Source: Neoechinorhynchus agilis (lineage: Eukaryota > Animalia > Acanthocephala). From it: a stretch of DNA of 64,000 bases. The stretch covers positions 10,865,480 through 10,929,479 of the forward strand of contig CM121342.1 of assembly GCA_051530055.1 (NCBI GenBank), written 5' to 3'. Below are positions 5,815 through 35,907 of the stretch, in pieces. How positions within the stretch are numbered: the stretch's first letter is position 1; each line of letters begins with the position of its first letter. The position numbers were made by a program, and so were the translations under genes. Below the pieces are notes generated by a model. That model had not been told where the DNA came from, did no database searches, and was given only the letters and a program-made list of their open reading frames with translations.

Positions 5815-6059
5815 ATCAGTGCAAGGAAAAAAGAATTGATTTGCTGAACGAGTTCAGTTAAATACTTCTTTTATCCAATCACTTTGCTCGCAGGGAACTT
5901 AGCTTCTTTGGTTATAATTTTCGGGTGAATGAGGTTTTAGGCTCTCGCTTTTTATGTATGGCGATAATAAATAGGCGTTTTGACATTGCCAAAATGTTAG
6001 CTTTATCAACATATTGAAAAAGCGTAAAAAATCAGTGATTCGTCTTTGTCTATTTTAGG

Positions 6060-6420
6060 CAATTGTTTAACGAGGCCCTGCGCCACGGTATTAAACAACC
6101 AGTGTCTCGACGCCCCGATTTAACAACGGCGAATTTTATGTTGCTGGCTGCGAATAGCGTCCCAGAGAGAGCAAACGCTTTTTTGCCATGGAATACAGTG
6201 ACCATTGACACCGGAATCTTCACACCGAAGACTAAAAACCATCAAGAAAACCTGTAATCTTCGCCAAGAAAGCATCCATGAACGCTTCGTCCCAGAGAAG
6301 GCATTTGCCTTCTATCCACTGGTACTGTCCAGTCTACGGAGGCCATCGAGTCCGCAAACATTGCTCGGCTCAGGATGTTGGGCACTTTTAAGATTATTAA
6401 GAGCACGACTACGAGAATTG
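6060..6420 (-). mobile_element. Rearranged remnant of a CRE-like (RLE-type) non-LTR retrotransposon
   Basis: Minus strand matches the RLE region of the elements at 39000-39200 and 47650-47850 (EPSNVCGLDG.RR, aggcaaatgccttctctgggacg, cgcagccagcaacataaa). Confidence 0.75.
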
Positions 6421-7907: not shown

Positions 7908-8499
7908 TTGTCTTTTCAAAATTAGAGAATCTGAGGCCAGAAGGTTATTTTGATGTTTGAACATTGAATTCGTTCATAAACTTTCAAGCAACATTAATAA
8001 ATACACAAGATTGTGCCGAAATATCGGACTAAATAAATTTCTACAATTTTTCCATCGGTAATTTTTGTCAAATTGTTCAACTAATATTATTGAGTTTCGC
8101 TTTCATTTCTCCTTACAAACCTACATTAATTCGAAGGAAGACTAAGCAAAAAGGAAAACTTCGCACGGATTTAGTATCGTTCATATATCAAAACTGCAAA
8201 AAATCATACAATTGCCCAAATATTTCTTTATCTCTTAGACACTTAAATTGTTCATAGAGGGCAAAAATCGGGAAAAATAAATCAATCGTCCTCATACAAC
8301 GTAGACAAATTCGATTAATCAGTCAATCATAGTCGATATACAAATCATTGGACATCGGAATCTCGTCGAAAGACACGTATAGGGTTATGCAAAACTGAGA
8401 ATAAGAAACTTCTTATATAAACGTAGCCGCTACTGTGGATGTTTAAGAAACGATGAATGCCATTATACCCGCTTAAGGTACCCGAACCATCCCTTTGAA

Positions 8500-11400
8500 A
8501 TCAGAAGGGAGCCTTGTGCTTGAGGCCTTGCACACATCTCTTCGGCCAACACCATGGATGGTAACAAATCGAACTACAGTTAAAAATTGCCCGCTAAGGA
8601 TGTATTGAAAATCAATAGAAAACGCCACGCAGTGCTAAAAGGTACGAGCGGACATATTCTAGCAACAACCTTGTGTTATTGAGTGATCGATAACGGCTGA
8701 ACAGTTGTGTGTGTTGGGGGGAATAATAAAAAACGGGTTTTCCAAAAAAAAAATGCGCACCAATGTTTTTGGCGGAGGGTGGCAAACGGCCACCCACTTC
8801 CCTGAGAATTCCCGTACATGAAGCGCGACAAACAGCCATCAATCACTGATTCAGGATCGAATCCCACTTCTCAGTTCTTGTTGGAAGGGTCCCTTTCTGA
8901 TGAAATCCCCCAACAGCTGACATCTTCATTCAAAACTCAACGCGAGTACCTAGCCCTTCCGGTCAAGAGAAGGCCGTATATACTCACAATCAAGTCAAAT
9001 CCGATTATGCCTAAGGACGTAATCTACAACCAAAGCGTTGCTCCGTGGACGCGCTCATTCCATAACGATGGAGTTAAACGAATTGATCGTATTACTTATT
9101 TCGGAGGTATTCTGAGAGTGTACCTAACGGACAGTATTTGGTTATCCAACTTGAAGGACTTTGTTAAATCCAAGCTTCCCAGGGATGTCTTCTCGGTGGA
9201 AGAGATTACTCAAAGGGTACAGTTCATGGCTAACGGTCTACAGCCCAATTTAGCTGCTGAAGACAAAGTAGAGTTCGAAAAACTTTTCAACGTGAAGATA
9301 AAATTTTTCCTCAACTCCAGAAGGTCTGGCACTCCTATATCGATAGCGATGGTGGAAGGATCCAGGCAAGTTAGGGATGACCTCTGTAAAAAAATACACT
9401 GTGCCTTTAATTGTTTTGCGATTCGATTCACACAGAAATCGGGAAGCCATCAAGATGACTATATTTTTTCCTCACTGCAACCTTTGCCACAAATGGGGAC
9501 ACTGGGCTCAACAATGTCCTAATTCGGAAACCCCGAAATGTGTTCACTGTGCTGAGACAGGTCATTCTGCTCAAAATTGCCCAAACAAGTCAATCAAAAG
9601 ATGTGTCAATTGCAATGGACAACACTCTGTATTTTACAAAGGATGTCCTGAATTCAAGAAGTATTGGAATTGGGCTCAAAACGGGCAGCCCTTTGCTAAA
9701 AAAAGCGATAGCGCCGGGTGGAGACCGGCTGTCGCAGCAAACTCGTTCGCAGTGCCTCTTCATAGAGCAACCCCCTTTTCAAAAGATAACGATCTTGAAG
9801 AGCTCGGACTCTAAAGACTCGCATCGCTTACCTCCATCGCAGTTGGTTACCATGGAAATTCTGGAGGAACGTTTAGAGGAGTCTTGTAACAAACTTCTAA
9901 CGGTCATGCAGGCGCGCTTCACTGAGGCCATCGTGGCTTTTGAGAGGAAGCTGAGTACACTCATTGGGAACTTGGTCAATCTTCCTGATTTGATTTCATC
10001 GAGTTTACCTAGTCAACGTGGTGCAAAGCTAAAAAGAGCGAATGCGACGGAAAAAAACTCTCATGGGGCCAAGAAACTCAATGTCGATTCTAGTATAAAC
10101 CACTCAGATATCGAGGACGTCGTCATGGAAGTCGAAGAAATCGACTCTGAATATGTTAACAGGATCATTAACACTCAATCCTCGCTCATTAACAACGGAA
10201 CTGCGGCCCTAATATCAGATGAAGTCGCCAGAATATGATAACTCGAAGGCACAGGTAATGGTGGGGGATCTCCGGGTGCTGCAATGGAATTGTGGAGGGG
10301 CGGCCAATCTTACCAGGCTCGCTCGGTTCACACCAGGTGTTTCCATCATCCTACTACAGGAAACGAAAAGTATTCACACTCTACACCAACTTTATAACTA
10401 TCTACCTCATCTTAACTGTTCAATGTTCTCCTCTTTTATTACTGGCCCATTCAGTCCCGCCTCACAAGGTCTTATTTCAATTTTTCATTCCTCATTAAAT
10501 CCCCAACTTATAGCCTCCTACACCTCACCGGAAATGTCGTACTCACTTTTTAAATTTCTCTTTAATTGGAAGTACCTCTCGATTGTTAATTTGTACATCA
10601 GACCAAGTTTTATTCATCGTCCATATATCAAAAACAAAATCAAATGGCTTCTCAATGCCAATATCGACTTTGTTGTGGGGGATTTTAACGACCCATCTTT
10701 AAAATGGTCCAGAGCCATTGTCAACGCAGTCAAACCTCTTTACTCTCTAACCCTCCCGAATACTCCGTCTTTCCACAATCTAGTATTAAATACACACTCG
10801 TTCTTAGATCTGATAATCTTTAAGAGATATCTTAACCTTTCAATTCAATTCGATCGTCAGGTGTCTCTCTTTGACCTCCTAGGGCATGATATCCTTATCT
10901 GGTCATTCGGTCCTATGAATGCACTCCGCAAATCATATCACATTTCTCCACTCAACGTGGCCTTTTTCCGTCTAATCAGCCAAATCGCTCTATCTTCGAG
11001 CACCTTACAATCTAATCGGTCATCCATTTTACCGTCTGTCAATAACATCCTCAATTTGGTTGCTAATACCTTTCTGTTTCGAACGGTAAAGGTTTTCTCT
11101 CGTCCTTACGAAAGTCGCTCTCTTCGCTTTCTCGGACGCCAACTTTTTCTGGCCAAACGTTCTGGAGACGTACTTCTCACGAAAATCTTATCTAGTCATT
11201 ATTGGGCAGCCCAATGTCGACAGAGGATGCAACAGAAAGCAAATCTTCTTAATAGCCTGAAACCCTTTTCCTCACATTGGTGGCACACTTTTCAAAGGAA
11301 GAGATACATACCATGGAAATCGAAAATCTCCGGCTGGTTAAAATCAACGTCTATAGACGATATTTAGCCATTTTTGCTTTTCATTCAGAGGGCTCTGTCA

Positions 11401-12780
11401 AGGATGCTTTACCCGTGACAATTTTTCGACGGGTCTTTGCCGGTCGTGTAGATATTTTATTAAGTGACATCCTAAAAGTATGGTCCGACAATCCGAAATT
11501 GGCATCCTCCAACTCAAGCTCAGGCACCAAAATCTTTACTTTACTTCCCCGGGACTGCATCCTAAGGCTGGCCGAATTAATGCTGAACTGCTCCCCTTAT
11601 GCTTGGAGAGAGATTAATGTGGCTCGGCGTATTTTTCTTATTAAAAATGGGAAAAAGTCAGTCTCTCAGCCTAAGGATCTCCGCCCAATTTCCCTACAGA
11701 ACCCCTTTGTAACCATTTACGAACGAGCCTTAGCACTTCGCTTGAGAGCCTTTATAACAGAAAATAGCTGCATATCGACTAATTGCCATGGTTTTCAAAA
11801 AAAGGGAAATCCGTACACTCTGCTTTAACCAATATTTACAATAACTTCACTAACACCAATCTACCCTTGAAAGCCATAATGGCTGTTGATCTATCTCAAG
11901 CGTTCGACAAGATATCTTTGTCTTTTATTATGGAGATATTAGAATTTTTTAGCGTCCCTCATAATTTGATCTCCCGAATTCACAATATTCTTTTTACCAA
12001 GTCCTTCTTTTACGAGGATGATGCTTAGAAATCAACCTATTACATGACCACGGGTGTCCCACAAGGTTCACCGCTTTCCCCGATCCTGTTTCTACTTGCT
12101 TCACAGTATATAGTTAAAAATTTCAAAACCCGTAATGTTTCTATAACCTGTTATGCGGATGACTTAACTTTCGTATTCTCTGCGCACAGAGCTTTCAAAC
12201 TCAAAAGTTTGATTGAGCAGTGCATCAACTACCTCAATGTAGTCTTACCTCGTATGAATTTATCCCTCAATCCCTCCAAATCGTTCTGTATCTTCAAGGT
12301 TCGCTCAGGTAGACTTCGATGGGATCTCAAATCATTTTTTAACAATCTAATGAACCCCTTGAATCAGAAGCGAGCGGATAATGCCAATACTCCACTAAAA
12401 TTACGCATTCTTGGACATACGTTAACGGTCAATCTGTCACCCAGAACCGATATCAATAAGTTGAAAAGGTTGCATGAAACTAGGCCTGAACTCGTTACAA
12501 GCGCAAGCTATTTGGAAAACCTGGTGTATCCCCGGCCTTGTCTTCTTTTCCAGAGGTCGCCCCCCCCGAACATAAGGCCTCCTTTATAGACGCCTTCACC
12601 CAGCACCTAGATTCCCTCCCATTTTCCTGGGCCGGAGAGTTAAAGAAGTTCTGTGAACCCAGAATTGGGCGATGGACAACATGACAGGTATTCTCTCACC
12701 AAACCGTTAATCTGTTAGATAAATAAGTCACGATTGCGCTCTAAAAACCATGATAAATAAATATATAATATAATAAAAAA
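8500..12780 (+). mobile_element. APE-type non-LTR retrotransposon, near full length, with frameshifts (LINE copy 1)
   Basis: ORF1 with three CCHC knuckles (CNLCHKWGHWAQQC, CVHCAETGHSAQNC, CVNCNGQHSVFYKGC) and a coiled coil. ORF2: LQWNCGG, LLQET, VVGDFN, LRPISLQN, DLSQAFD, GVPQGSPLSP, YADD. A-rich tail ending at 12780. The 5' boundary is approximate. Confidence 0.92.
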
Positions 12781-19092: not shown

Positions 19093-20005
19093 CCTGCTCT
19101 CTGTAAACTCTATGTCCACATTTTGGATTCTGCATTGTTTCAACCCAGTGTCTTCTTCTGGGAATCCTTGCATCAATATCGTGATATGTATGCATAGATA
19201 ATTCGCCACTTAAAGAAAAATTGTTCGACCATGGGGTTCTGTTCGGGATTGATTGCGCGTTCGTTAATGAATAATCAGTTATCAAATCGAGCGAACCACT
19301 TTGTATGTTTTCAATCGGATTGAGACGTGTTGTTGGAAGTTCGCTTTGTCCTGGTAAAGCACAGAATTGCGGCATGCGCCTTAAATGATAATTTGAACTA
19401 TATTCATATGATTGTTCTTGAGTTAAATTTATTGGATGTATGTTTTGAAGATAAGGCAATTGAGGTGTTGATTGTTGAGAAATTAAATAATGATGTTGTC
19501 TCAAATGTGGATTAAGGCTAAATCCACTAGGTCGATTAACTGGCCGTTGAGATCGGAGTAGAGAATGACGACATAGATTTTGATCAAGCGCATGTGGATA
19601 TCAAGACGAATCCAAGAATGGATGAGTTATATGATGTAAATTTTGTTGTGACTGTGATAGTCTATAATGAGGCCAGTTTGAGCCATTTGAACGTTGATAA
19701 GTATTGTACTGATGGAATAAATCAGTTTGTGAATGTCGAAACTGCGATGAGTGTTCGCCCGTTTGTATAATCTCTTTTTGACTCCGATCTAAACCACGTG
19801 GATCGACCGGATTGGACACAATGGGAAAATCATATAGAAGTCGCTGATTAAGATTCACTTGTGTCATTTCGTTGTTGTATGTTGTCCGAGATTTGTGCGC
19901 TATATGTTGGTCGTGTATTTCGGTCGCTCATTCCAATCACCATAGTGCAATTTCTGGGTTTTTTAGCAGTAGAAAGTTGGAATAAAAGGAGATTGTATTA
20001 TGCGA
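19093..20005 (-). repeat. 913-bp duplicate of 25103-26015 (5' part of the TBP-fold gene, without the TBP domain)
   Basis: Identical ORF translations offset by 6010 bp; sharp junctions at cctgctctctg and gtattatgcga. Confidence 0.95.
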
Positions 20006-21234: not shown

Positions 21235-21935
21235 CGTCCTCTGATTCCAAATATGGTCTTTTCGCCGTAGCTATCACGGATCATGAGTTCTATGAACTTC
21301 GCAAATATAAACCGTAGGACCTCCAACCAGTGCTTCACGGTTCATGAGTTGTATGAACGTCGCTTAAACTCGATCGTTGGACCCATTTCGATCCGCTGGT
21401 TCCAAATATGTTCTTCTTTTCGCCATTGCTATCAAGGTTCGTGAATCCTATCAACTTCTCTAAAACTTTACTGGTGGACCTCTAACTAGTGTCTGTCTAG
21501 TCTATTTCGATCCGCTGATTCAAAATATGGTTTTTTTTCGCCGTAGCTATCGCGTTTCATGAGGTATATGAACCTAGCTTAAACTTGACCGTTGGACCTC
21601 TAAGTAGTGTCCGTCTAGTCTATTTCTATCCGCCGATTCAAAATATGTTCTATTTTCGCCGTAGCTATCACGGCTCTTGAATCCTATCAACTTCTCTAAA
21701 ACTTTACCGTCCGATTTCTTAGTGTCCGTCTAGTATATTTCGACCCGCTGATTCCAAATATGTTCTTATTTTCGGCGTAGCTTTGACGGTTCGTGAATCT
21801 TATCAACTTCTTTTAAACTTGACCGTTGGACATCTAAGTGGTGTCCCCATAGTCCATTTCGACCCGCTGGTTCCAAATATGTTCTTATTTTCGCCGTAGC
21901 TATTTCGGTTCGTGAATCCTATCAACTTCTCTAGT
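21235..21935. repeat. Diverged tandem array, unit about 115-119 bp, about 6 copies
   Basis: Anchor (c/a)caaatatg at 21247, 21402, 21521, 21639, 21754, 21873; shared ttttcgccgtagctat and cctatcaacttc. Confidence 0.9.
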
Positions 21936-24697: not shown

Positions 24698-25877
24698 GCG
24701 CTGCACGGTCCGCCAAATCACGAGTCTGATCTAGCGTTCCGGGGCAATAAATGACAGCGCGACCAAATCGATAGAATGATACTTTTCCTGGGGGCGCATG
24801 ATGTAATAATGTTAAAATCCTTCCTTGACTATCCATCTTGGAATTCGTGGTTTTATTGGCCAGTTCACGAATGTTGAGCTCTTCGAAGATATTCAACATT
24901 GCGATGGTGTTATATATCGTTATTTGGAATTGAGGATATTCTTGAGGGACTGCTGGTAAAAATAGCCGTGAATTGTCTTCAATTTGAACTTCGGATTCAT
25001 TTATGGGCTTCAGAAATAAACATCTTCGCCTCCTCCTTTCTTCATTAACTAATTGAATTTGTCGCAGAATCGCGCTTGTAACTGTAACATTTCGAATATT
25101 CACCTGCTCTCTGTAAACTCTATGTCCACATTTTGGATTCTGCATTGTTTCAACCCAGTGTCTTCTTCTGGGAATCCTTGCATCAATATCGTGATATGTA
25201 TGCATAGATAATTCGCCACTTAAAGAAAAATTGTTCGACCATGGGGTTCTGTTCGGGATTGATTGCGCGTTCGTTAATGAATAATCAGTTATCAAATCGA
25301 GCGAACCACTTTGTATGTTTTCAATCGGATTGAGACGTGTTGTTGGAAGTTCGCTTTGTCCTGGTAAAGCACAGAATTGCGGCATGCGCCTTAAATGATA
25401 ATTTGAACTATATTCATATGATTGTTCTTGAGTTAAATTTATTGGATGTATGTTTTGAAGATAAGGCAATTGAGGTGTTGATTGTTGAGAAATTAAATAA
25501 TGATGTTGTCTCAAATGTGGATTAAGGCTAAATCCACTAGGTCGATTAACTGGCCGTTGAGATCGGAGTAGAGAATGACGACATAGATTTTGATCAAGCG
25601 CATGTGGATATCAAGACGAATCCAAGAATGGATGAGTTATATGATGTAAATTTTGTTGTGACTGTGATAGTCTATAATGAGGCCAGTTTGAGCCATTTGA
25701 ACGTTGATAAGTATTGTACTGATGGAATAAATCAGTTTGTGAATGTCGAAACTGCGATGAGTGTTCGCCCGTTTGTATAATCTCTTTTTGACTCCGATCT
25801 AAACCACGTGGATCGACCGGATTGGACACAATGGGAAAATCATATAGAAGTCGCTGATTAAGATTCACTTGTGTCAT
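24693..25877 (-). CDS. Divergent TBP-family (TRF2/TBPL1-like) protein with a Q/S/P/H-rich N terminus, truncated after one TBP repeat
   Basis: The last 78 aa (FQITIYN...LNIRELA...N...P...FGRAV...DQTRDLADRAAR, 24929-24696) fit TBP repeat 1 without gaps by eye. One in-frame TGA (25613-25611) would be removed by a candidate 81-nt GT-AG intron at 25617-25537. Confidence 0.7.
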
Positions 25878-26385
25878 TTCGTTGTTGTATGTTGTCCGAG
25901 ATTTGTGCGCTATATGTTGGTCGTGTATTTCGGTCGCTCATTCCAATCACCATAGTGCAATTTCTGGGTTTTTTAGCAGTAGAAAGTTGGAATAAAAGGA
26001 GATTGTATTATGCGAGTATAAACAACGAAAATAACATGAAGCCGTTGCAGGTCCCGGATTGGCCCATTTGCTTAAATATATTTTCACACCTGGGCATGTG
26101 ATTTGCCGGAGTGTCATAAAATCTATTGTAACTTTTTAAGTTAAAGCGAACAATGGATCCGCGAATTAATTGGAGCCGGACACTATTCGAATACGAGAAT
26201 TTTTTCTGGATCTGTCTCAGTTGTTTGTTCTTACGAAAGTGTCGATTTCGAGGACGGAACTTGGTGCTGTCGGCGTATCCAAAAGGGCACGCTCGCTTCT
26301 TGCGCGGGGATAACTGGTATGGACAAGGGGAATCCAACTGTTTAATTAAAACAAAGCATTGCGATGGCTGTAATCGGTGTTGACG

Positions 26386-26416
<31 letters not shown>

Positions 26417-26451
26417 TAAAGTGAAGAAATTAATTTAAGCGCGGGTGAACG

Positions 26452-28230
26452 GTGGAAGTAACTATGACTTTCCCTAAAGCTATTAACAACTTGATTGAAC
26501 TTTCGAAGTCCATAGCTATTTCCCCTCCACCGGGGACACGTGCTTCCTCCGCTTCAGATTCGCCTCAACAAAATGACAACACAGTTCAACAGCTTGATAA
26601 AGTTCAACAGCTAACAAGCAATGACGCTCATCCAATGAACAACAGCCAACATCATCAAACCCGTGTTAACGATTCAATGTCGTTGATTAGTAACGCAAAT
26701 GCAGCAGGAAACAACCCAGCGAAAAGCAAAAGTCCTGAACAAGTCCGCCGTGAATGCAGAATGGTCTACGGAATTTCTCAAGAACTTGGACTCAGGTGCC
26801 CCGAGTGCGATCTAGTGACGGTTGGAAAGTCAAGGGTCAAACTATTTGTTGAACATCAATCCGCCGTTCACCTACACGATTCTATTATATGTACCTGCCT
26901 AGTCTGTGACGACTATCAATGCAATGAATCGAGGTCAATAGGCAATCACCTCAATAAGTGCCAACAGCGATTCCCGCACAAAACAAGCTCATAACAGTGT
27001 ACTCGGCGGAAACGCTGCAGTGAAGCAAAACTCGGCAATAATGCAATACACTGATCCTGGAAGCCTAGTTTTCTGCATCATCTGTCGCCTCAAAATTTAT
27101 GGCCTTGGACAATTCAATTTTGTTATGGAGCATCTTAAAGACGCCCATCAATTTGAGAATATTGAATTTGATTGCGACAATTGCTGCAATCATCGCCCTT
27201 CCTCCTTCATATTAGCACGAGGACACTTCAATCATTGTATTAGGAATTACGTAGCAGGAGTTAATATATCAAAAAATCTCTGACAATCTGGTCAACCTCA
27301 GAAGCACATGTAGTACAGGATCTAGAGCAAAGCGATCCGTCTCTAAAGCGAGTGTCAGGCCTCTTTTATGGAGCTATATTTTGCCAACGTTCGCCCAACA
27401 AGATACGCCGCAAAGATGGAGATTTAAAGGATTTAGCTGAGAAGGACGCGCAGCTGACGAGAAAACACTGAAGAACGAGTAATTATATCTCCTAACCTAC
27501 CACATGGACCTATGTACAATGACGCTCAGTACAATGGCAATGCATCAACCTCCGAAATTGCCACAGTCAGGCCTGCCTCAACTTCTATGCCTACCCCAAC
27601 ATCGATGCCTATCTCAGCTTCGATATCTACCTCAGGAACTTGTAAATTGAGTGGGCGCGTAAACCTGTAACAGGTACCTACACCCCATATTGGGGCGTGC
27701 GCGTTTGCAGCACAGGAGGGACACGAAATTCTTCTGAATTGCCTTCAACGACAGGATATTAATCCACGCTATCGTCCTTTTCTGAACAATGAGTCGGAAG
27801 AGCTACGCAACCATACTGGTCCAATGAATCAGGAATTTATCGAATCAATGAGTGCGCGATATCTTTCGTACTTGAAATGCGGGCGACAAGGTTCTCCCGA
27901 ATGCCCGGCGATGTCCCGCGCGCGCAGTCTTGGTCTCAAAATTATAAAGCTGAAGAAAAATTCAACAATGGCACTGGCAACCGCCGTCTTTCACGTTCAC
28001 AAGAACCCTACACAATGGAGGAGAGTAAAAGACCGCATCTTGGACTCTGTTTCACTTCAGCGCCAATACTTTGAGCATGTTGTTAAAAGGCTTCCTGGCG
28101 CAAATCTCACATTAAATGGCATACTGGATGCTCTCAAAAAGGACAACGAACATTCAGTTCACTTCATCCTGTGGGCCGCAGCGACTGCCTATTAATGCGA
28201 CTTTGTAGCTTATACTCCAAGCGATGATGT
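26452..28230 (+). mobile_element. Decayed 5' part of a probable RLE-type retroelement: two C2H2+CCHC zinc-finger pairs and an OTU-like segment
   Basis: CPEC..H...H/CLVC..H...C and CIIC..H...H/CDNC..H...C; then LGLKIIKLKKNSTMALATAV...WRRVKDRIL...ILWAAATAY. Confidence 0.5.
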
Positions 28231-29680: not shown

Positions 29681-30142
29681 GTTTGATGGCTAGTCAAGAG
29701 AAGAGCAAATAAAAAAACTATTAGACAAACCTTTTTCGCGAAATAATTCATAACAATAAAGTAATCTTTAACTTAAAATTTTGATCGCCACCCTTCACTA
29801 TTCTTTTAAGTGTTTTGAAAACCCCTTACACACCTCTGGGACAGGAATCTCGATGGGTTGTGTTAGACCGCTGCCTCTCGGTTGGTGTTTCAAGCGGAAG
29901 AGTATCTGCGAGTGGGCGCCCGGCAGCCCTATGCGACCTGCTGGCCAAGTGTAGCAGTCGCTCAGTTATAAATGACGTGAGCAAACTCCTTAGCGAGTAG
30001 CTTTCATCCATCATCTTCGATCGAGGACTGAACTAGACGGCCGACTGAACACGTAATCCACTCCAACATTTCACAGATCGGAACTCAGTCGGCTAACCAG
30101 GCATAAAATAAAATATTCTTTAATGTCGACAAGAATTGTCCA

Positions 30143-30901
30143 TCAATAATACAGAACAGCAAATGCGAGTGCAATGCACGTTAATGCCATATAAGGACTT
30201 TTTCGTTCACCTAAACGAACTGTCGCTTTTATCATTTTCAACGATTTGTCTCAGCTTTCCACCAACACAGCAAGGTACTCCACATCGCTCAGGTTGTTTG
30301 AGCCCACGTTGGAAACTATTAAAATGCTGGAAAGGGCTACGGATAGTGAACACAATTGCATGAGCCTGTGATAAGAGATCTTCGTCACCGGAATGGGCAC
30401 TGGCTTTAGCGGAAACGACGTCGTTCACAACTCGTGCCCGATCCAATAAGCTCATGTTCTCAACGAAACTACTCGTAACAACCACTGACAAATGAGTTTC
30501 AGAACCGACCGGAGATCGATGTTTGTAGCTTTCATTGAACACTTCTACATCGATTGCACGAATAAGGGGAGACGTTCGCAGACGTTCGGCGATTTTTCTT
30601 CCAAGTGGTCCAATAAGGCGTGCTGCGCTGGTGGACATCTGAAACAAACAGTTTACCTATTCTAGCAAATTTCCATAATGTAGTAATGAACCTTAACGAA
30701 GCGATGAAACAATGAGGAACACAACGTGGCAAATGAACGTACGCTGATCCTTTATTGGTCAAAACACTTGGGAATATTGCCTTTATGTAAGTACAAGTGC
30801 ATACTAAAAGACTCATGACAATCATAAGACTTTGGAAATTGAACAATGCCGACTGTAGAAGAAGAACGTCTCAACAGAAAGAAGACAAGAATGCTCACCA
30901 T
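30143..30901 (-). CDS. TMEM167: Protein kish (TMEM167); exons 30901-30899, 30852-30743, 30691-30657, 30210-30143; 71 aa
   Basis: Spliced product MSALFNFQSLMIVMSLLVCTCTYIKAIFPSVLTNKGSAFITTLWKFARIGERKSPYMALTCIALAFAVLYY; all three introns are GT-AG; 216 nt in total. Confidence 0.92.
30207..30638 (-). CDS. bolA: BolA-family protein (BolA1-like), intronless, inside kish intron 3 on the same strand
   Basis: GPLGRKIAERL, VEVFNESYKH, GSETHLSVVVTS, SLLDRARVVNDV, HAI, PCCVGG; 143 aa. Confidence 0.88.
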   Translation of the reverse strand: MSTSAARLIGPLGRKIAERLRTSPLIRAIDVEVFNESYKHRSPVGSETHLSVVVTSSFVENMSLLDRARVVNDVVSAKASAHSGDEDLLSQAHAIVFTIRSPFQHFNSFQRGLKQPERCGVPCCVGGKLRQIVENDKSDSSFR

Positions 30902-31666
30902 TGGAATCTGAAAATCGGAACAGTTAGTAACGAATTGTAAAGATGTCATTCATAGGTTGTTTCTGATGAAGGCGACATAAAGAAAAATGATTTAGTTTTA
31001 TTTAGGACTTCTTCAGAATCGTTTGCAGGAGGAAATAAAATTAAATCGTTTTCTTTATTCCATCTGAACAAAAATAGTAACGAAGAACAAGGACGAGTGC
31101 CCCAATGAATAGAACGAATACACGAATATTCAATTTAGTGACACTGAAGAAAGTGGAACGTTAATGAACCGACAACTTTTTTCGAGTCAAAAACAACAAT
31201 ACATTTACATTGGCCATCTTGTGAAATACTCTACTTGATTTTTCCAGTAACAAAACTTGATCATTAATACAAATAAGTCGACAATCAATCACCTCAAAAG
31301 TTTTTCCGAAAGAAAAAAATTATGGCATTTTAATTAAGGCTAAAGCAATTTCGTCGATCAATAGGAAACTGAGCAATAGGACGCGCTGCCACACAGAATC
31401 TTTTACGCAGATCAACAACATTTAACGATACTGAATATTTACGAATAGCTTAGCGATCGAGTTTAAAGTATAATCCACGACGAAATACAAACTTACCCAT
31501 GTAAACACAAACTGAATAGAAAACAACCACCAAACCTAACAGCACAATAACGTAGAAAGTTAGTTTTTGTTAGGGATACGCTGAGAGCTGCTTTTCGTAG
31601 TACACCCGCAACATCAAGCCGCACTGAAGGCGTCATTTCGGGACCTTCAGACCGCAAAACTCTAGA

Positions 31667-34600
31667 ATGTCAACGCATCCATCAGAGCCGGATTTGGAGA
31701 AGTTAAAAGCGGACGTGAGTTCACTTCGAGAGGAGGTGAGTGCTTTTGCGAAGGGACATGCTGATTACGTGGATAAATTGAACGTCGTCGAGGGACTCAA
31801 GAAGCGTTATCAGATGCAATGGAACAAACTGAAAGCTCGATTGGACCAAGTGGAACACAATTACAACGACGAAGTAACGAAACGAACACGATCACATGCA
31901 AAAACATCGCCAAAATTAATTAAAATCAGTGGATGACCAGGGGGCGGGGTTAGGTCAATGTTAATTCTTTCGTATCTAGAACGTCATAACGCGACCTATC
32001 TTTTTGTTTGGGTTATCCGCCGAAATGTCACGGACGATCTTGAATTGAGGCATATAAAAAGCATTTTAGACAGAGATGGCAATTACTTGGTTCGTATTCG
32101 CGATACACTTCCTCGACCACCGGAAATTTATCTCAAAATAGTCCTTGGGCAAGTGCCTCTGTGCATTTTGGACAACATGGAAAAGTGGAAGTACAAACAG
32201 GACTACGAATGGTTCAAATTGGTCGTCAGTCTCATCATTTTTGTTTGCTCATTCGTGTTGCTTTTCGTTCCATCGCGAGCGTTAGCCGATTCTTTATTCC
32301 AACTTCTATTAGTTTGGTACTATTGCACACTCACAATCCGTGAGAGCATCCTTGTAACAAACGGATCAAGGATTAAGCTCTGGTGGCGTGTTCATCATTT
32401 TTTGGCTACTGTTCAAAGTTCCATATTCCTCATTTGGCCGTCGTCAAACAGCTACGAACACGTTCGATCACCAATGTTCATGTACTGTGCTTACATCACG
32501 TTTGTTCAAACTCTTCAGTTTTATTACCAAAAGGGTCTTTTGTATAGACTCAGAGCTCTTGGAGAAACTAAACCCATGGATATAAGTTTAAAGTGAAGCT
32601 TTTGTGGAACGGACTCAAATTACCTGGCGAATTCTAAAATGAAACGGGATTTATACACCCACACAATTAAATGGAAATATTGAATTTTTTCTATGTTGTT
32701 CTTTAGGGAAAAATGCAAGCTTTTTACGAAAAATTTGCAGTGTAGAAAAAATTGAGAGGCGAATTCTAAAATGAAATCGGGTTTTATACACCCACACATT
32801 TAAATGGAAATACTGAATTTTTTCTATGTTGTTCTTTGGAGAAAAAGCTTTTTACGAAAAATTTGCAGTGTAGAAAAAATTGATTAGCGAATTCATAAAT
32901 GAAACGGGATTTATACACCCACACAATTAAATGGAAATACTGAATTTTTTCTATGTTGTTCTTTAGAGAAAAATGAAAGTTTTTTACGAAAAATTTTCAG
33001 TGTAGAAAAAATTGAGAGGCGAATTCTAAAATGAAACGGGATTTATACACCCACGCATTTAAATGGAAATACTGAATTTTTTCTATGTTGTTCTTTAGAG
33101 GAAAAGCCTTTTACGAAAAATTTGCAGTGTAGAAAAAAATTGAGAGGCGAATTCTAAAATGAAATCGGGTTTTATACACCCACACATTTAAATGGAAATA
33201 CTGAATTTTTTCTATGTTGTTCTTTGGAGAAAAAGCTTTTTACGAAAAATTTGCAGTGTAGAAAAAATTGATTAGCGAATTCATAAATGAAACGGGATTT
33301 ATACACCCACACAATTAAATGGAAATACTGAATTTTTTCTATGTTGTTCTTTAGAGAAAAATGAAAGTTTTTTACGAAAAATTTTCAGTGTAGAAAAAAT
33401 TGAGAGGCGAATTCTAAAATGAAACGGGTTTTATACACCCACACATTGAAATGGAAATATTGAATTTTTCTATGTTATTCTTTGGAGAAAAAGCTTTTTA
33501 CGAAAAATTTGCAGTGTAGAAAAAATTGAGAGGCGAATTCTAAAATGAAACGGGATTTATACACCCACGCATTTAAATGGAAATACTGAATTTTTTCTAC
33601 GTTGTTCTTTAGAGAAAAAGCCTTTTACGAAAAATTTGCAGTGTAGAAAAAATTGAGAGGCGAATTCTAAAATGAAACGGGGTTTATACACGCACACATT
33701 TAAATGGAAATATTGAATTTTTCTATGTTGTTCTTTGGAGAAAAAGCTTTTTACGAAAAATTTGCAGTGTAGAAAAAATTGAGAGGCGAATTCTAAAATG
33801 AAACGGGATTTATACACCCACGCATTTAAATGGAAATACTGAATTTTTTCTATGTTGTTCTTTAGAGGAAAAGCCTTTTACGAAAAATTTGCAGTGTAGA
33901 AAAATTGAGAGGCGAATTCTAAAATGAAATCGGGTTTTATACACCCACACATTTAAATGGAAATACTGAATTTTTTCTATGTTGTTCTTTGGAGAAAAAG
34001 CTTTTTACGAAAAATTTGCAGTGTAGAAAAAATTGAAGCGAATTCTAAATGAAACGGGATTTATCCCGCATTAAATGGAAATACTGAATTTTTTCATGTT
34101 GTTCTTTAGAGAAAAAGCCTTTTACGAAAAATTTGCAGTGTAGAAAAAAATTGAGAGGCGAATTCTAAAATGAAATCGGGTTTTATACACCCACACATTG
34201 AAATGGAAATATTGAATTTTTCTATGTTATTCTTTGGAGAAAAAGCTTTTTACGAAAAATTTGCAGTGTAGAAAAAATTGAGAGGCGAATTCTAAAATGA
34301 AACGGGATTTATACACCCACGCATTTAAATGGAAATACTGAATTTTTTCTACGTTGTTCTTTAGAGAAAAAGCCTTTTACGAAAAATTTGCAGTGTAGAA
34401 AAAATTGAGAGGCGAATTCTAAAATGAAACGGGGTTTATACAGGCACACATTTAAATGGAAATATTGAATTTTTCTATGTTGTTCTTTGGAGAAAAAGCT
34501 TTTTACGAAAAATTTGCAGTGTAGAAAAAATTGAGAGGCGAATTCTAAAATGAAACGGGATTTATACACCCACGCATTTAAATGGAAATACTGAATTTTT

Positions 34601-35907
34601 TCTATGTTGTTCTTTAGAGGAAAAGCCTTTTACGAAAAATTTGCAGTGTAGAAAAAATTGAGAGGCGAATTCTAAAATGAAATCGAGTTTTATACACCCA
34701 CACATTTAAATGGAAATATTGAATTTTTTCTATGTGGTTCTTTATAGAAAAATGAAAGCTTTTACGAAAAATTTGCCGTGTAGAAAAAATTGAGAGGCGA
34801 ATTCTAAATGAAACGGGGTTTATACACGCACACACATTTAAATGGAAATACTGAATTTTTTCTATGTTGTTCTTTGGAGAAAAAGCTTTTTACGAAAAAT
34901 TTGCAATGTAGAAAAAATTGAGAGGCGAATTCTAAAATGAAACGGGATTTATACACCCATACAATTAAATGGAAATACTGAATTTTTTCTATGTTGTTCT
35001 TTAGAGAAAAATGAAAGCTTTTTACGAAAAATTTGCAGTGTAGAAGAAATTGAGAGGCGAATTCTAAAATGAAACGGGATTTATACACGCACACACATTT
35101 AAATGGATATACAAACCATTGCCCACCAAAATATTTGGATCGTGGTCTCTTTTCTCGAGAAAAGATTGTGAATTATTATGGGTAAATCCTTTTTTGGTAC
35201 AATGAGATTAATTGTACAGTGTCATCTTGAAATTTCATGTTGTTTCTCAGGAAATTTCTTGAATATGCACGATAAGGTTAAATAGTAAATGTACATTATG
35301 TGAATTTCTAATAGAAATAAACATAAGCGTTTGTATCGATTTCCCCTTTTTGTTGGATTTCTCAAAATTATTGACGGTTTTATTAAGCACATAGGAAATG
35401 ATTTATTCGCCGACCCCTGGCAATAGTTTTGCTAATAAAGTGCAAAGGAGAAATATGAAAAGTGCGCAATAAACTCACTTTAAAGGAGAAACTTTCTGAA
35501 CTAAGCGCCAACCACAAATGCTTCCGATAGAAGGTCTACATACCTGGATGCTACGAGGTCTTGGATTTCTTGTGCCATTTCTGTTTATCGGTTATGCCCT
35601 TCAGCTTTACTTTGCATTTTGGTTGGTTCAACTGTACCTGAGGCCGATTTCCGATTGCTGTCACGAGTGGCACATTCTCGCCTCTGCCATCTTGATGAGT
35701 GTATTCTTCGTTGGAAATGCATTGACGGCGTGCGTCGTGCTGGTGACAAAGTTCAGACAGCAGACTGCTGAATATTCGTGGATGGTTAGTAAATACGAAG
35801 GATTCGTATCAACGATTAGATCATTTGCTGAACAAATGGAGACTGATTTTGTGAGCAATAACCGATTCACCGGTTTAATCGGTCAGAGAAATGAATTCGG
35901 CTCGTGA
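31667..35907 (+). CDS. TMEM120: TMEM120/TMPIT protein, multi-exon
   Basis: N-terminal coiled coil; YLKIVLG, KWKYKQDYEWFKL, VWYYCTLTIRESILVTNGSRIKLWWRVHHFL, FYYQKGLLYRLRALGE; last exon GLHTWMLRGLGFLVPFLF follows the satellite. Confidence 0.93.
32624..35110. repeat. AT-rich satellite, unit about 125-132 bp, about 19 copies, in a TMEM120 intron
   Basis: gcgaattc anchors at about 32629, 32761, 32889, 33021, 33149, 33278, 33409 and onward; blocks repeated at offsets of about 389 and 752 bp. Confidence 0.97.

Follow-up and report, generated by a model that had tools for sequence, protein, structure and literature searches.

The window analysed here is the whole stretch of 64,000 nucleotides (64 kb) taken from contig CM121342.1 of the eoacanthocephalan Neoechinorhynchus agilis, a thorny-headed worm that belongs to the Syndermata, the group uniting rotifers and acanthocephalans. 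On its minus strand lies a kish gene whose third and last intron is almost completely filled by an open reading frame (ORF) for a BolA1-like protein, read in the same direction as its host. The kish coding sequence is made up of four segments, 30901-30899 (the ATG), 30852-30743, 30691-30657 and 30210-30143, which once spliced encode a protein of 71 amino acids, MSALFNFQSL...AFAVLYY, followed by the stop codon. This protein scores 36.7 bits against Pfam DUF1242 (PF06842; Kish/TMEM167), where the cut-off is 25; it is 55-60% identical to animal Kish proteins and 100% identical to the annotated hypothetical protein ACOME3_007187 of N. agilis. The features of the locus, in the order of transcription, are the following.

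30908..30929, minus strand: candidate 3' splice site located 5' of the kish ATG, read from the sequence
30899..30901, minus strand: kish start codon, the end 3 nt of coding exon 1, with donor ATG/gtgagc in phase 0
30743..30852, minus strand: kish exon 2, 110 nt; the spliced coding sequence translates, and four other animal phyla have an exon of identical size
30657..30691, minus strand: kish exon 3, 35 nt, ending TAG/gtaaac
30211..30656, minus strand: kish intron 3, 446 nt, phase 1, TAG/gtaaac ... tttag/GTGAAC
30639..30650, minus strand: internal 3'-splice-site motif tgtttgtttcag, which starts 6 nt past the GT of the exon-3 donor and runs right up to the BolA ATG
30207..30638, minus strand: BolA1-like ORF, 143 codons plus TGA, single exon, Pfam BolA
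30143..30210, minus strand: coding part of kish exon 4, 68 nt, encoding ERKSPYMALTCIALAFAVLYY and then the stop (30145-30143)
30119..30124, minus strand: ATTAAA poly(A) signal, 19 nt beyond the kish stop

The anatomy that the earlier note had described, with a BolA gene beginning shortly after the exon-3 donor of kish and stopping inside its fourth exon, holds in every coordinate on the minus strand. The BolA ATG, at 30638, is 18 nt past the kish exon-3 donor and has tgtttgtttcag immediately upstream, and its TGA (30209-30207) corresponds to nucleotides 2-4 of kish exon 4. The intron is indeed essentially all coding: 428 of its 446 nt (96%) are BolA coding sequence, and its excess over kish introns 1 and 2, which measure 46 and 51 nt, corresponds very nearly to the length of the ORF. 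The BolA frame is closed 21 nt before this ATG by the TAG at 30659-30657, the very end of kish exon 3, and the protein therefore starts at 30638. The terminal exon on which this description depends is the one that kish needs, exon 4 being conserved, present as a sole copy within the 64-kb window and bordered by an intron at the ancestral, phase-1 position.

The two genes are so tightly interlocked that little or nothing in the intron is left to BolA for its own signals. At most 18 nt of intron are available for a private 5' end. At the other end, the final BolA codons double as the pyrimidine tract and the AG of the kish intron-3 acceptor. Being spelled out in BolA codons, this acceptor is weak: pyrimidines make up 40% of positions -23 to -4, versus 65-75% in introns 1 and 2. 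No canonical poly(A) signal (AATAAA or ATTAAA) occurs between 30638 and 30125, so that the host intron holds none of BolA's own, and the ATTAAA at 30124-30119 is the first after the BolA stop. Since BolA is without a private 3' end, its mRNA must include exon 4 and the 3' UTR of kish, and the kish ATTAAA is presumably common to the kish and BolA mRNAs.

Several results indicate that the ORF is a BolA1-type gene. It matches Pfam BolA (PF01722) with 37.6 bits for a cut-off of 25.7 (E = 2.7e-9), and the best solved structures for it are those of mouse and human BOLA1 (1v60, 5lci). It retains all 13 columns that are invariant in the BolA alignment; E36, S37, H40, E47, H49, R67, R69, N72, H93, G126 and G127 are invariant among seven BolA1-like proteins. 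Among the fold positions that it preserves are the E-T/S-H motif, the C-terminal His of the 'HA' motif and the final C-x-GG. An exhaustive phmmer search of 1.84 billion representative sequences returned 95 matches, all weak save two, from the bdelloid rotifer Rotaria sordida and from Seison nebaliae, which belongs to the sister group of acanthocephalans, whose BolA-like proteins align with amino acids 9-134 of the N. agilis protein. A profile search built on these three sequences recovered about 30 bdelloid-like sequences at E < 1e-48, followed by a sharp drop to generic BolA proteins. The syndermatan proteins have in common a C-terminal segment, F-x-RGLK...P-x-C-x-GG (FNSFQRGLKQPERCGVPCCVGG in N. 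agilis versus WYDSFRRGLKLEEKYRTPPCLGG in bdelloids), which generic BolAs are without. From these comparisons we conclude that the ORF is a true BolA1-type gene and the vertical ortholog of the BolA1-like gene of Seison and bdelloids.

The N. agilis protein has a basic N-terminus, with six R or K residues among its first 27 amino acids, and is about 15 amino acids shorter than its bdelloid orthologs. Proteins of the BolA1 type are located in mitochondria, where they act with a monothiol glutaredoxin in the maturation of Fe-S proteins. The gene looks functional, with an intact ORF of 143 codons in which the invariant residues and the syndermatan C-terminal segment have been kept; for a composition of roughly 60% A+T, we estimate at about 1e-4 the chance that a frame of 146 codons is open. 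The exact protein had no match in a collection of 5.8 billion proteins, and no second BolA1 of N. agilis was among the matches of the profile search. In its sequence, the protein is rather divergent: the His of the RHR motif is replaced by Ala (RAR), there is a loop insertion of eight residues, and identity to its relatives is about 34%, a combination that may reflect relaxed constraint.

The origin of the nesting can be approached from the history of the host intron. The exon structure of kish was mapped exactly in five other animals. In four of them, Paramuricea (cnidarian), Lethenteron (lamprey), Tubulanus (nemertean) and Opisthorchis (trematode), the exons measure 3, 110, 35 and 71 nt, with introns after codons 1 (phase 0), 37 (phase 2) and 49 (phase 1). 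All three intron positions are the same in N. agilis, whose exons measure 3, 110, 35 and 68 nt. In Rotaria the third intron has been lost and the structure with an intron directly after the ATG is present; in Opisthorchis all three introns are 41-47 nt long. The comparison indicates that kish intron 3 stands at an ancestral metazoan intron position and is older than the nesting of BolA.

BolA, for its part, stands by itself in Seison nebaliae, Rotaria sordida and Adineta vaga, where it consists of one exon and has different neighbours; the bdelloid gene is divergent to its neighbour. No kish exon was found within 10 kb of BolA in Seison or Rotaria sordida, and the genes called up to 10 kb away from the Adineta BolA do not include kish; conversely, no BolA was found in or near the kish genes of Rotaria magnacalcarata, Tubulanus, Paramuricea, Lethenteron and Opisthorchis. 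Word-index, exhaustive and three-sequence profile searches yielded no acanthocephalan BolA or kish beyond those of N. agilis, and the close relatives found by the exhaustive and profile searches are bdelloid-like sequences and Seison only. The synteny proposed as a check by the earlier note thus fails in every relative examined, all of which are outside the Acanthocephala. As BolA is separate from kish in all three of these relatives and the other kish loci examined are without it, the nesting is, on this comparative evidence, derived, with BolA relocated on the branch leading to N. agilis. The idea that the arrangement couples a secretory-pathway protein to an Fe-S-related one finds no support; Seison, Rotaria and Adineta do not show the arrangement, which for this reason looks like the product of a chance gene relocation in one lineage.

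Two ways in which the relocation might have left traces were considered and rejected. The intron could have been made by the insertion of BolA itself, with a target-site duplication visible in the likeness between TAGGTAAAC at the donor and TAGGTGAAC on the acceptor side. The phase-1 intron at IG/ERK is ancestral, however, and the likeness is due to the splice consensus together with conserved Gly-Glu-Arg codons. Alternatively, BolA could be a retrocopy with duplicated acceptors (GTTTGTTTCAG resembling GTTCGTTTAG, with an A-rich stretch before the second), but the unrelated acceptor of intron 2, TTCGTTAAG, is equally similar, and the tail of the ORF leaves no space for a former 3' UTR.

The annotation of the locus deserves some comments. 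The N. agilis genome has been annotated by BRAKER2 with RNA-seq (PMC12690905), and in the annotation of GCA_051530055.1, kish is called on CM121342.1 at window positions 30949-30143, minus strand. The annotated model encodes 87 amino acids, uses an upstream ATG at 30949 and runs through the acceptor motif at 30908-30929. This motif consists of a perfect TACTAAC branch-point sequence (30929-30923), a pyrimidine tract and a CAG (AG at 30909-30908); the whole, TACTAAC-N13-CAG, ends 6 nt upstream of the kish ATG. We regard it as a candidate acceptor for either a 5'-UTR intron or a spliced leader. The start of kish is at 30901, not at 30949, and the annotated N-terminal extension of 16 amino acids is spurious. 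The neighbouring TMEM120 gene is annotated on the plus strand at 31667-32596, divergent from kish across a gap of about 765 bp. No gene is called in the region of the BolA ORF, and the supplement of the genome paper mentions neither BolA, kish, TMEM167 nor the locus tag. Predictors of the AUGUSTUS type are not known to call another gene within the intron of a model on the same strand. The silence of the annotation on BolA therefore says little.

How, then, could BolA be expressed? Transcripts initiated upstream of 30657 include the exon-3 donor and therefore risk losing BolA. Since the splicing of kish (junction 30657/30210) throws BolA away, the two proteins are alternative outputs of the locus, as the earlier note had argued. 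The internal acceptor motif sits exactly where removal of the exon-3 donor would be required, and a splice from kish exon 1 to 30639 is in frame, exon 1 ending in phase 0. We infer from these features that BolA is expressed and that the acceptor at 30639 is used. The fuller proposal, that kish and BolA form one transcription unit in which the BolA mRNA is produced by splicing, in cis or in trans, to this acceptor, is one for which we see about even chances.

According to this proposal, a promoter shared by both genes would lie in the gap of about 765 bp between kish and TMEM120, and both would end at the poly(A) signal downstream of kish. By default, introns 1-3 would be taken out to give the kish mRNA, with destruction of the BolA ORF. 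In the alternative mode, an upstream 5' splice site would be joined to tgtttgtttcag/ATG at 30639. As donor, a site in cis could serve, for instance that of kish exon 1, which ends with ATG and would give a protein starting M-MSTSAARL..., or one in trans, from a spliced-leader RNA; we would rate a cis and a trans leader about equal. Such a splice would remove exons 2 and 3 of kish along with the exon-3 donor and leave the 30211 acceptor unpaired, so that intron 3, exon 4 and the kish 3' UTR would become the terminal exon of BolA. The exon-3 donor and the pyrimidine tract of the internal acceptor are only 6 nt apart, and recognition of one would probably exclude that of the other, which could make a switch. 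It is also plausible that the weak intron-3 acceptor slows host splicing and gives time for the alternative route.

Two ways of joining kish to BolA can be dismissed: splicing from exon 2 to 30639 would give a fusion that is out of frame and soon terminates, and the TAG at 30659-30657 prevents translation from continuing out of exon 3 into the BolA frame. As regards the internal acceptor itself, its pyrimidine tract is short, and no good consensus was found in kish exon 3 and intron 2, where its branch point must fall. In a genome with short introns, moreover, an acceptor placed 46 nt from the exon-1 donor should strongly outcompete one placed 260 nt away, which speaks against the use of 30639.

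Seison offers a parallel for the 5' end. Its BolA ATG is preceded, at a distance of 4 nt, by ttctttttccag, a strong acceptor motif, and no consensus-like donor was seen in the gap of 256 nt upstream. The 5' end of BolA may thus be made by splicing throughout the clade formed by Seison and acanthocephalans.

Among the three routes to BolA offered by the earlier note (trans-splicing or an internal start at the tttcag site, or intron retention), the use of the tttcag acceptor appears the most coherent and intron retention the least likely. Splicing in cis from kish exon 1 is a further way of using this acceptor, beyond those that the note names. Retention would alter kish as had been predicted, since translation of the unspliced form yields a C terminus ending ...SPYSCNRCRSVQ, and BolA would then be translated from a bicistronic mRNA with overlapping ORFs, the first encoding this kish variant. 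The weak intron-3 acceptor fits such a transcript, as does the poor context of the kish AUG (C at -3, T at +4), and an mRNA that retains its last intron has no downstream exon junction and should escape EJC-dependent decay. Ribosomes would nevertheless meet five AUGs before that of BolA (that of kish itself, three within exon 2 and another within exon 3), and the BolA AUG lies inside the extended kish frame, which stops only at 30532, so that leaky scanning or reinitiation would be very inefficient. We hold this route to be very improbable.

That BolA is a nested gene of the classical kind, driven by a private promoter and transcribed from within 30655-30639 or from the ATG itself, seems to us distinctly unlikely. 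Most same-strand intronic genes of animals do have promoters of their own, the bdelloid BolA stands alone and divergent to its neighbour, and a start downstream of 30657 would escape the host donor. The window available for this start is only about 18 nt, however; promoter elements would have to reside in kish exons 2-3 and introns 1-2, that is, in highly constrained coding sequence and two introns of about 50 nt. The gene would have a very short leader and, with no separate canonical poly(A) signal, would borrow the kish poly(A) site, and the tgtttgtttcag motif would be left without a role. There is likewise little chance, in our opinion, that the ORF is a silent or decaying relic, an open frame left over after BolA was relocated and lost its expression. 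Its absence from an RNA-seq-guided BRAKER2 annotation (PMC12690905) would agree with this, as would its high divergence, with RAR in place of RHR and the loop insertion, and gene loss in parasitic rotiferans is the stated subject of PMC12256650. A relic would, on the other hand, have to account for a frame of 146 codons that is open against the estimated chance of about 1e-4. It would also have to explain the invariant BolA columns and the clade-specific C-terminal motif kept after a long divergence, and ORF boundaries that match those of the intron within 18 nt, which suggests continued selection. Production of BolA by splicing to the 30639 acceptor is the reading that we retain in what follows.

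If the leader were provided in trans, the question of spliced-leader trans-splicing in this group would be raised. Bdelloid rotifers trans-splice more than half of their mRNAs, and no leader was found in Brachionus ESTs (PMC1925144). For Acanthocephala, we found no report of spliced-leader trans-splicing in the literature. Start codons that closely follow strong acceptors are typical of trans-spliced genes, and at our loci strong acceptor motifs end 0 nt (N. agilis BolA), 6 nt (N. agilis kish) and 4 nt (Seison BolA) upstream of the ATG. No convincing acceptor was seen just upstream of four other annotated N. agilis start codons nearby, and a small sample of about 20 neighbouring genes of N. 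agilis, Seison and bdelloids showed no consistent pattern of acceptors at start codons. The bdelloid leader had no match in the 64-kb window, a result that says little. In its most extended form, the hypothesis would be that acanthocephalans trans-splice as bdelloids do and that the locus is an intron-resident cistron, a whole conserved gene having been packed into an old spliceosomal intron. A leader would be joined 18 nt past the host donor, and U1 at the donor and U2AF at the acceptor would form a binary switch, with a Golgi protein as one outcome and a mitochondrial Fe-S factor as the other. We consider this unlikely. To our knowledge, no operon of such a type has been described.

It is useful to compare the locus with known systems. 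In humans, a common promoter and common 5' exons serve CPNE1/RBM12 and more than 20 further gene pairs (PMC2568002). The kish/BolA locus would resemble them in that two unrelated proteins depend on one promoter, with common 5' exon(s) joined to alternative acceptors; a candidate acceptor motif stands next to the guest ORF (tgtttgtttcag/ATG), and a splice from exon 1 would be in frame. For the CPNE1/RBM12 type, cDNA and RT-PCR have demonstrated the sharing, which persists from fish to human, whereas in kish/BolA it is inferred and lineage-specific, no conservation being found among the related species compared, which are non-acanthocephalan. Unlike in CPNE1/RBM12, BolA shares the 3' exon and poly(A) site of its host and nearly fills a host intron. 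The VAChT gene lies within an intron of ChAT (PMC3053374). There, as here, a guest gene occupies a host intron on the same strand. In ChAT/VAChT, guest and host mRNAs are produced from shared 5' exons; VAChT lies in a large 5' intron and has its own 3' end, and both products act in one pathway. BolA differs in being located in the last intron, with a stop that overlaps the host acceptor, no known functional link to its host and no conservation.

A likeness to spliced-leader polycistrons, such as nematode operons or the trans-splicing of bdelloids (PMC1925144), can be seen in the UUUCAG-type acceptor near the ATG and in a downstream cistron that would depend on the promoter of the upstream gene. 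BolA does not follow the kish poly(A) site, as the downstream cistron of a canonical operon would; it lies inside a kish intron, and the two mRNAs would be mutually exclusive. Finally, the locus resembles ordinary same-strand nested genes of Drosophila and mammals in having a complete coding gene in a host intron. As a rule, nested genes of the classical kind are equipped with a promoter and a poly(A) signal of their own and take up a small part of a large intron. Here, in contrast, the ORF occupies 96% of the intron, and BolA has no canonical poly(A) signal to itself. From these comparisons, the locus would work most like the CPNE1/RBM12 pairs and VAChT/ChAT; it departs from both in how far the guest fills the intron, in its overlap with the host acceptor, in the shared terminal exon and poly(A) site, in the lack of conservation among relatives and in the lack of an evident functional relation of the products.

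The kish/BolA locus would then be an extreme, compact case in which two unrelated conserved proteins are mutually exclusive products of one pre-mRNA, with the splice signals of the host written inside the codons of the guest. Should the leader prove to be added in trans, this would be the first evidence of trans-splicing in Acanthocephala, whose status in this respect bears on the origin or loss of the process within Syndermata. Whatever the mechanism, the published annotation of N. agilis is without what appears to be its only BolA1 gene, and BolA1 could be wrongly scored as lost in analyses of gene loss in parasitic rotiferans.

One observation concerns the 5' end of the kish model deposited for N. 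agilis.

Window 30143-30949 (L001, the kish locus in the deposited assembly, 10001-10807), minus strand: deposited kish model P0001, 87 aa

This model begins at an upstream ATG (30949-30947, minus strand), and its coding sequence takes in both a ttttcag acceptor and a perfect match to the TACTAAC branch motif; it carries 16 extra residues at its start that are present in no ortholog, the conserved kish start being at 30901. A consensus donor, ATGG/GTAAGT, lies at about 31497 on the minus strand and could mark the end of a non-coding kish 5' exon, but such an exon would add an out-of-frame upstream AUG.

The rest of the window contains several repeats and an rRNA fragment.

32626-35112: satellite repeated in tandem over about 2.5 kb, unit about 130 bp, copies 90-95% identical
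21385-21933: second, short tandem array, period about 118 bp, copies about 80-90% identical
19093-20005 and 25103-26015: direct repeat of 913 bp, 100% identity, copies 6 kb apart
26321-26512, plus strand: isolated eukaryotic large-subunit rRNA fragment (model positions 2121-2337, 146.7 bits)

The satellite array starts 30 bp past the end of the TMEM120 gene, and the lowest G+C of the window (0.33) falls in the same place. The two copies of the direct repeat resemble LTRs flanking a very young retrotransposon; the alternative is an assembly duplication. The rRNA fragment lies about 300 bp past the second copy of the repeat, and an annotated 251-aa gene (26464-27283), which has no Pfam hits, starts within it. 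This may be a mis-called gene or an insertion derived from rDNA.

Two loci of relatives were also noted, one for kish and one for BolA.

L005 (kish locus of the bdelloid Rotaria magnacalcarata) 6001-6328: kish
L002 (BolA locus of Seison nebaliae, JALJEE010001010.1) 8318-12204: BolA cluster, genes all on the same strand

Rotaria kish has lost the intron that holds BolA in N. agilis, the ancestral third (phase-1) one, and retains the phase-2 intron together with that immediately 3' of the ATG. In Seison, BolA belongs to a tightly packed, one-strand series, with Peptidase_M16 ending 256 nt before it and Asparaginase_2 following after 230 nt. Its ATG comes 4 nt after a strong acceptor motif, and no consensus-like donor was seen in the gap upstream. 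We found no literature report of operons or trans-splicing in Seisonidea. The arrangement of Seison BolA looks operon-like or trans-splice-like.
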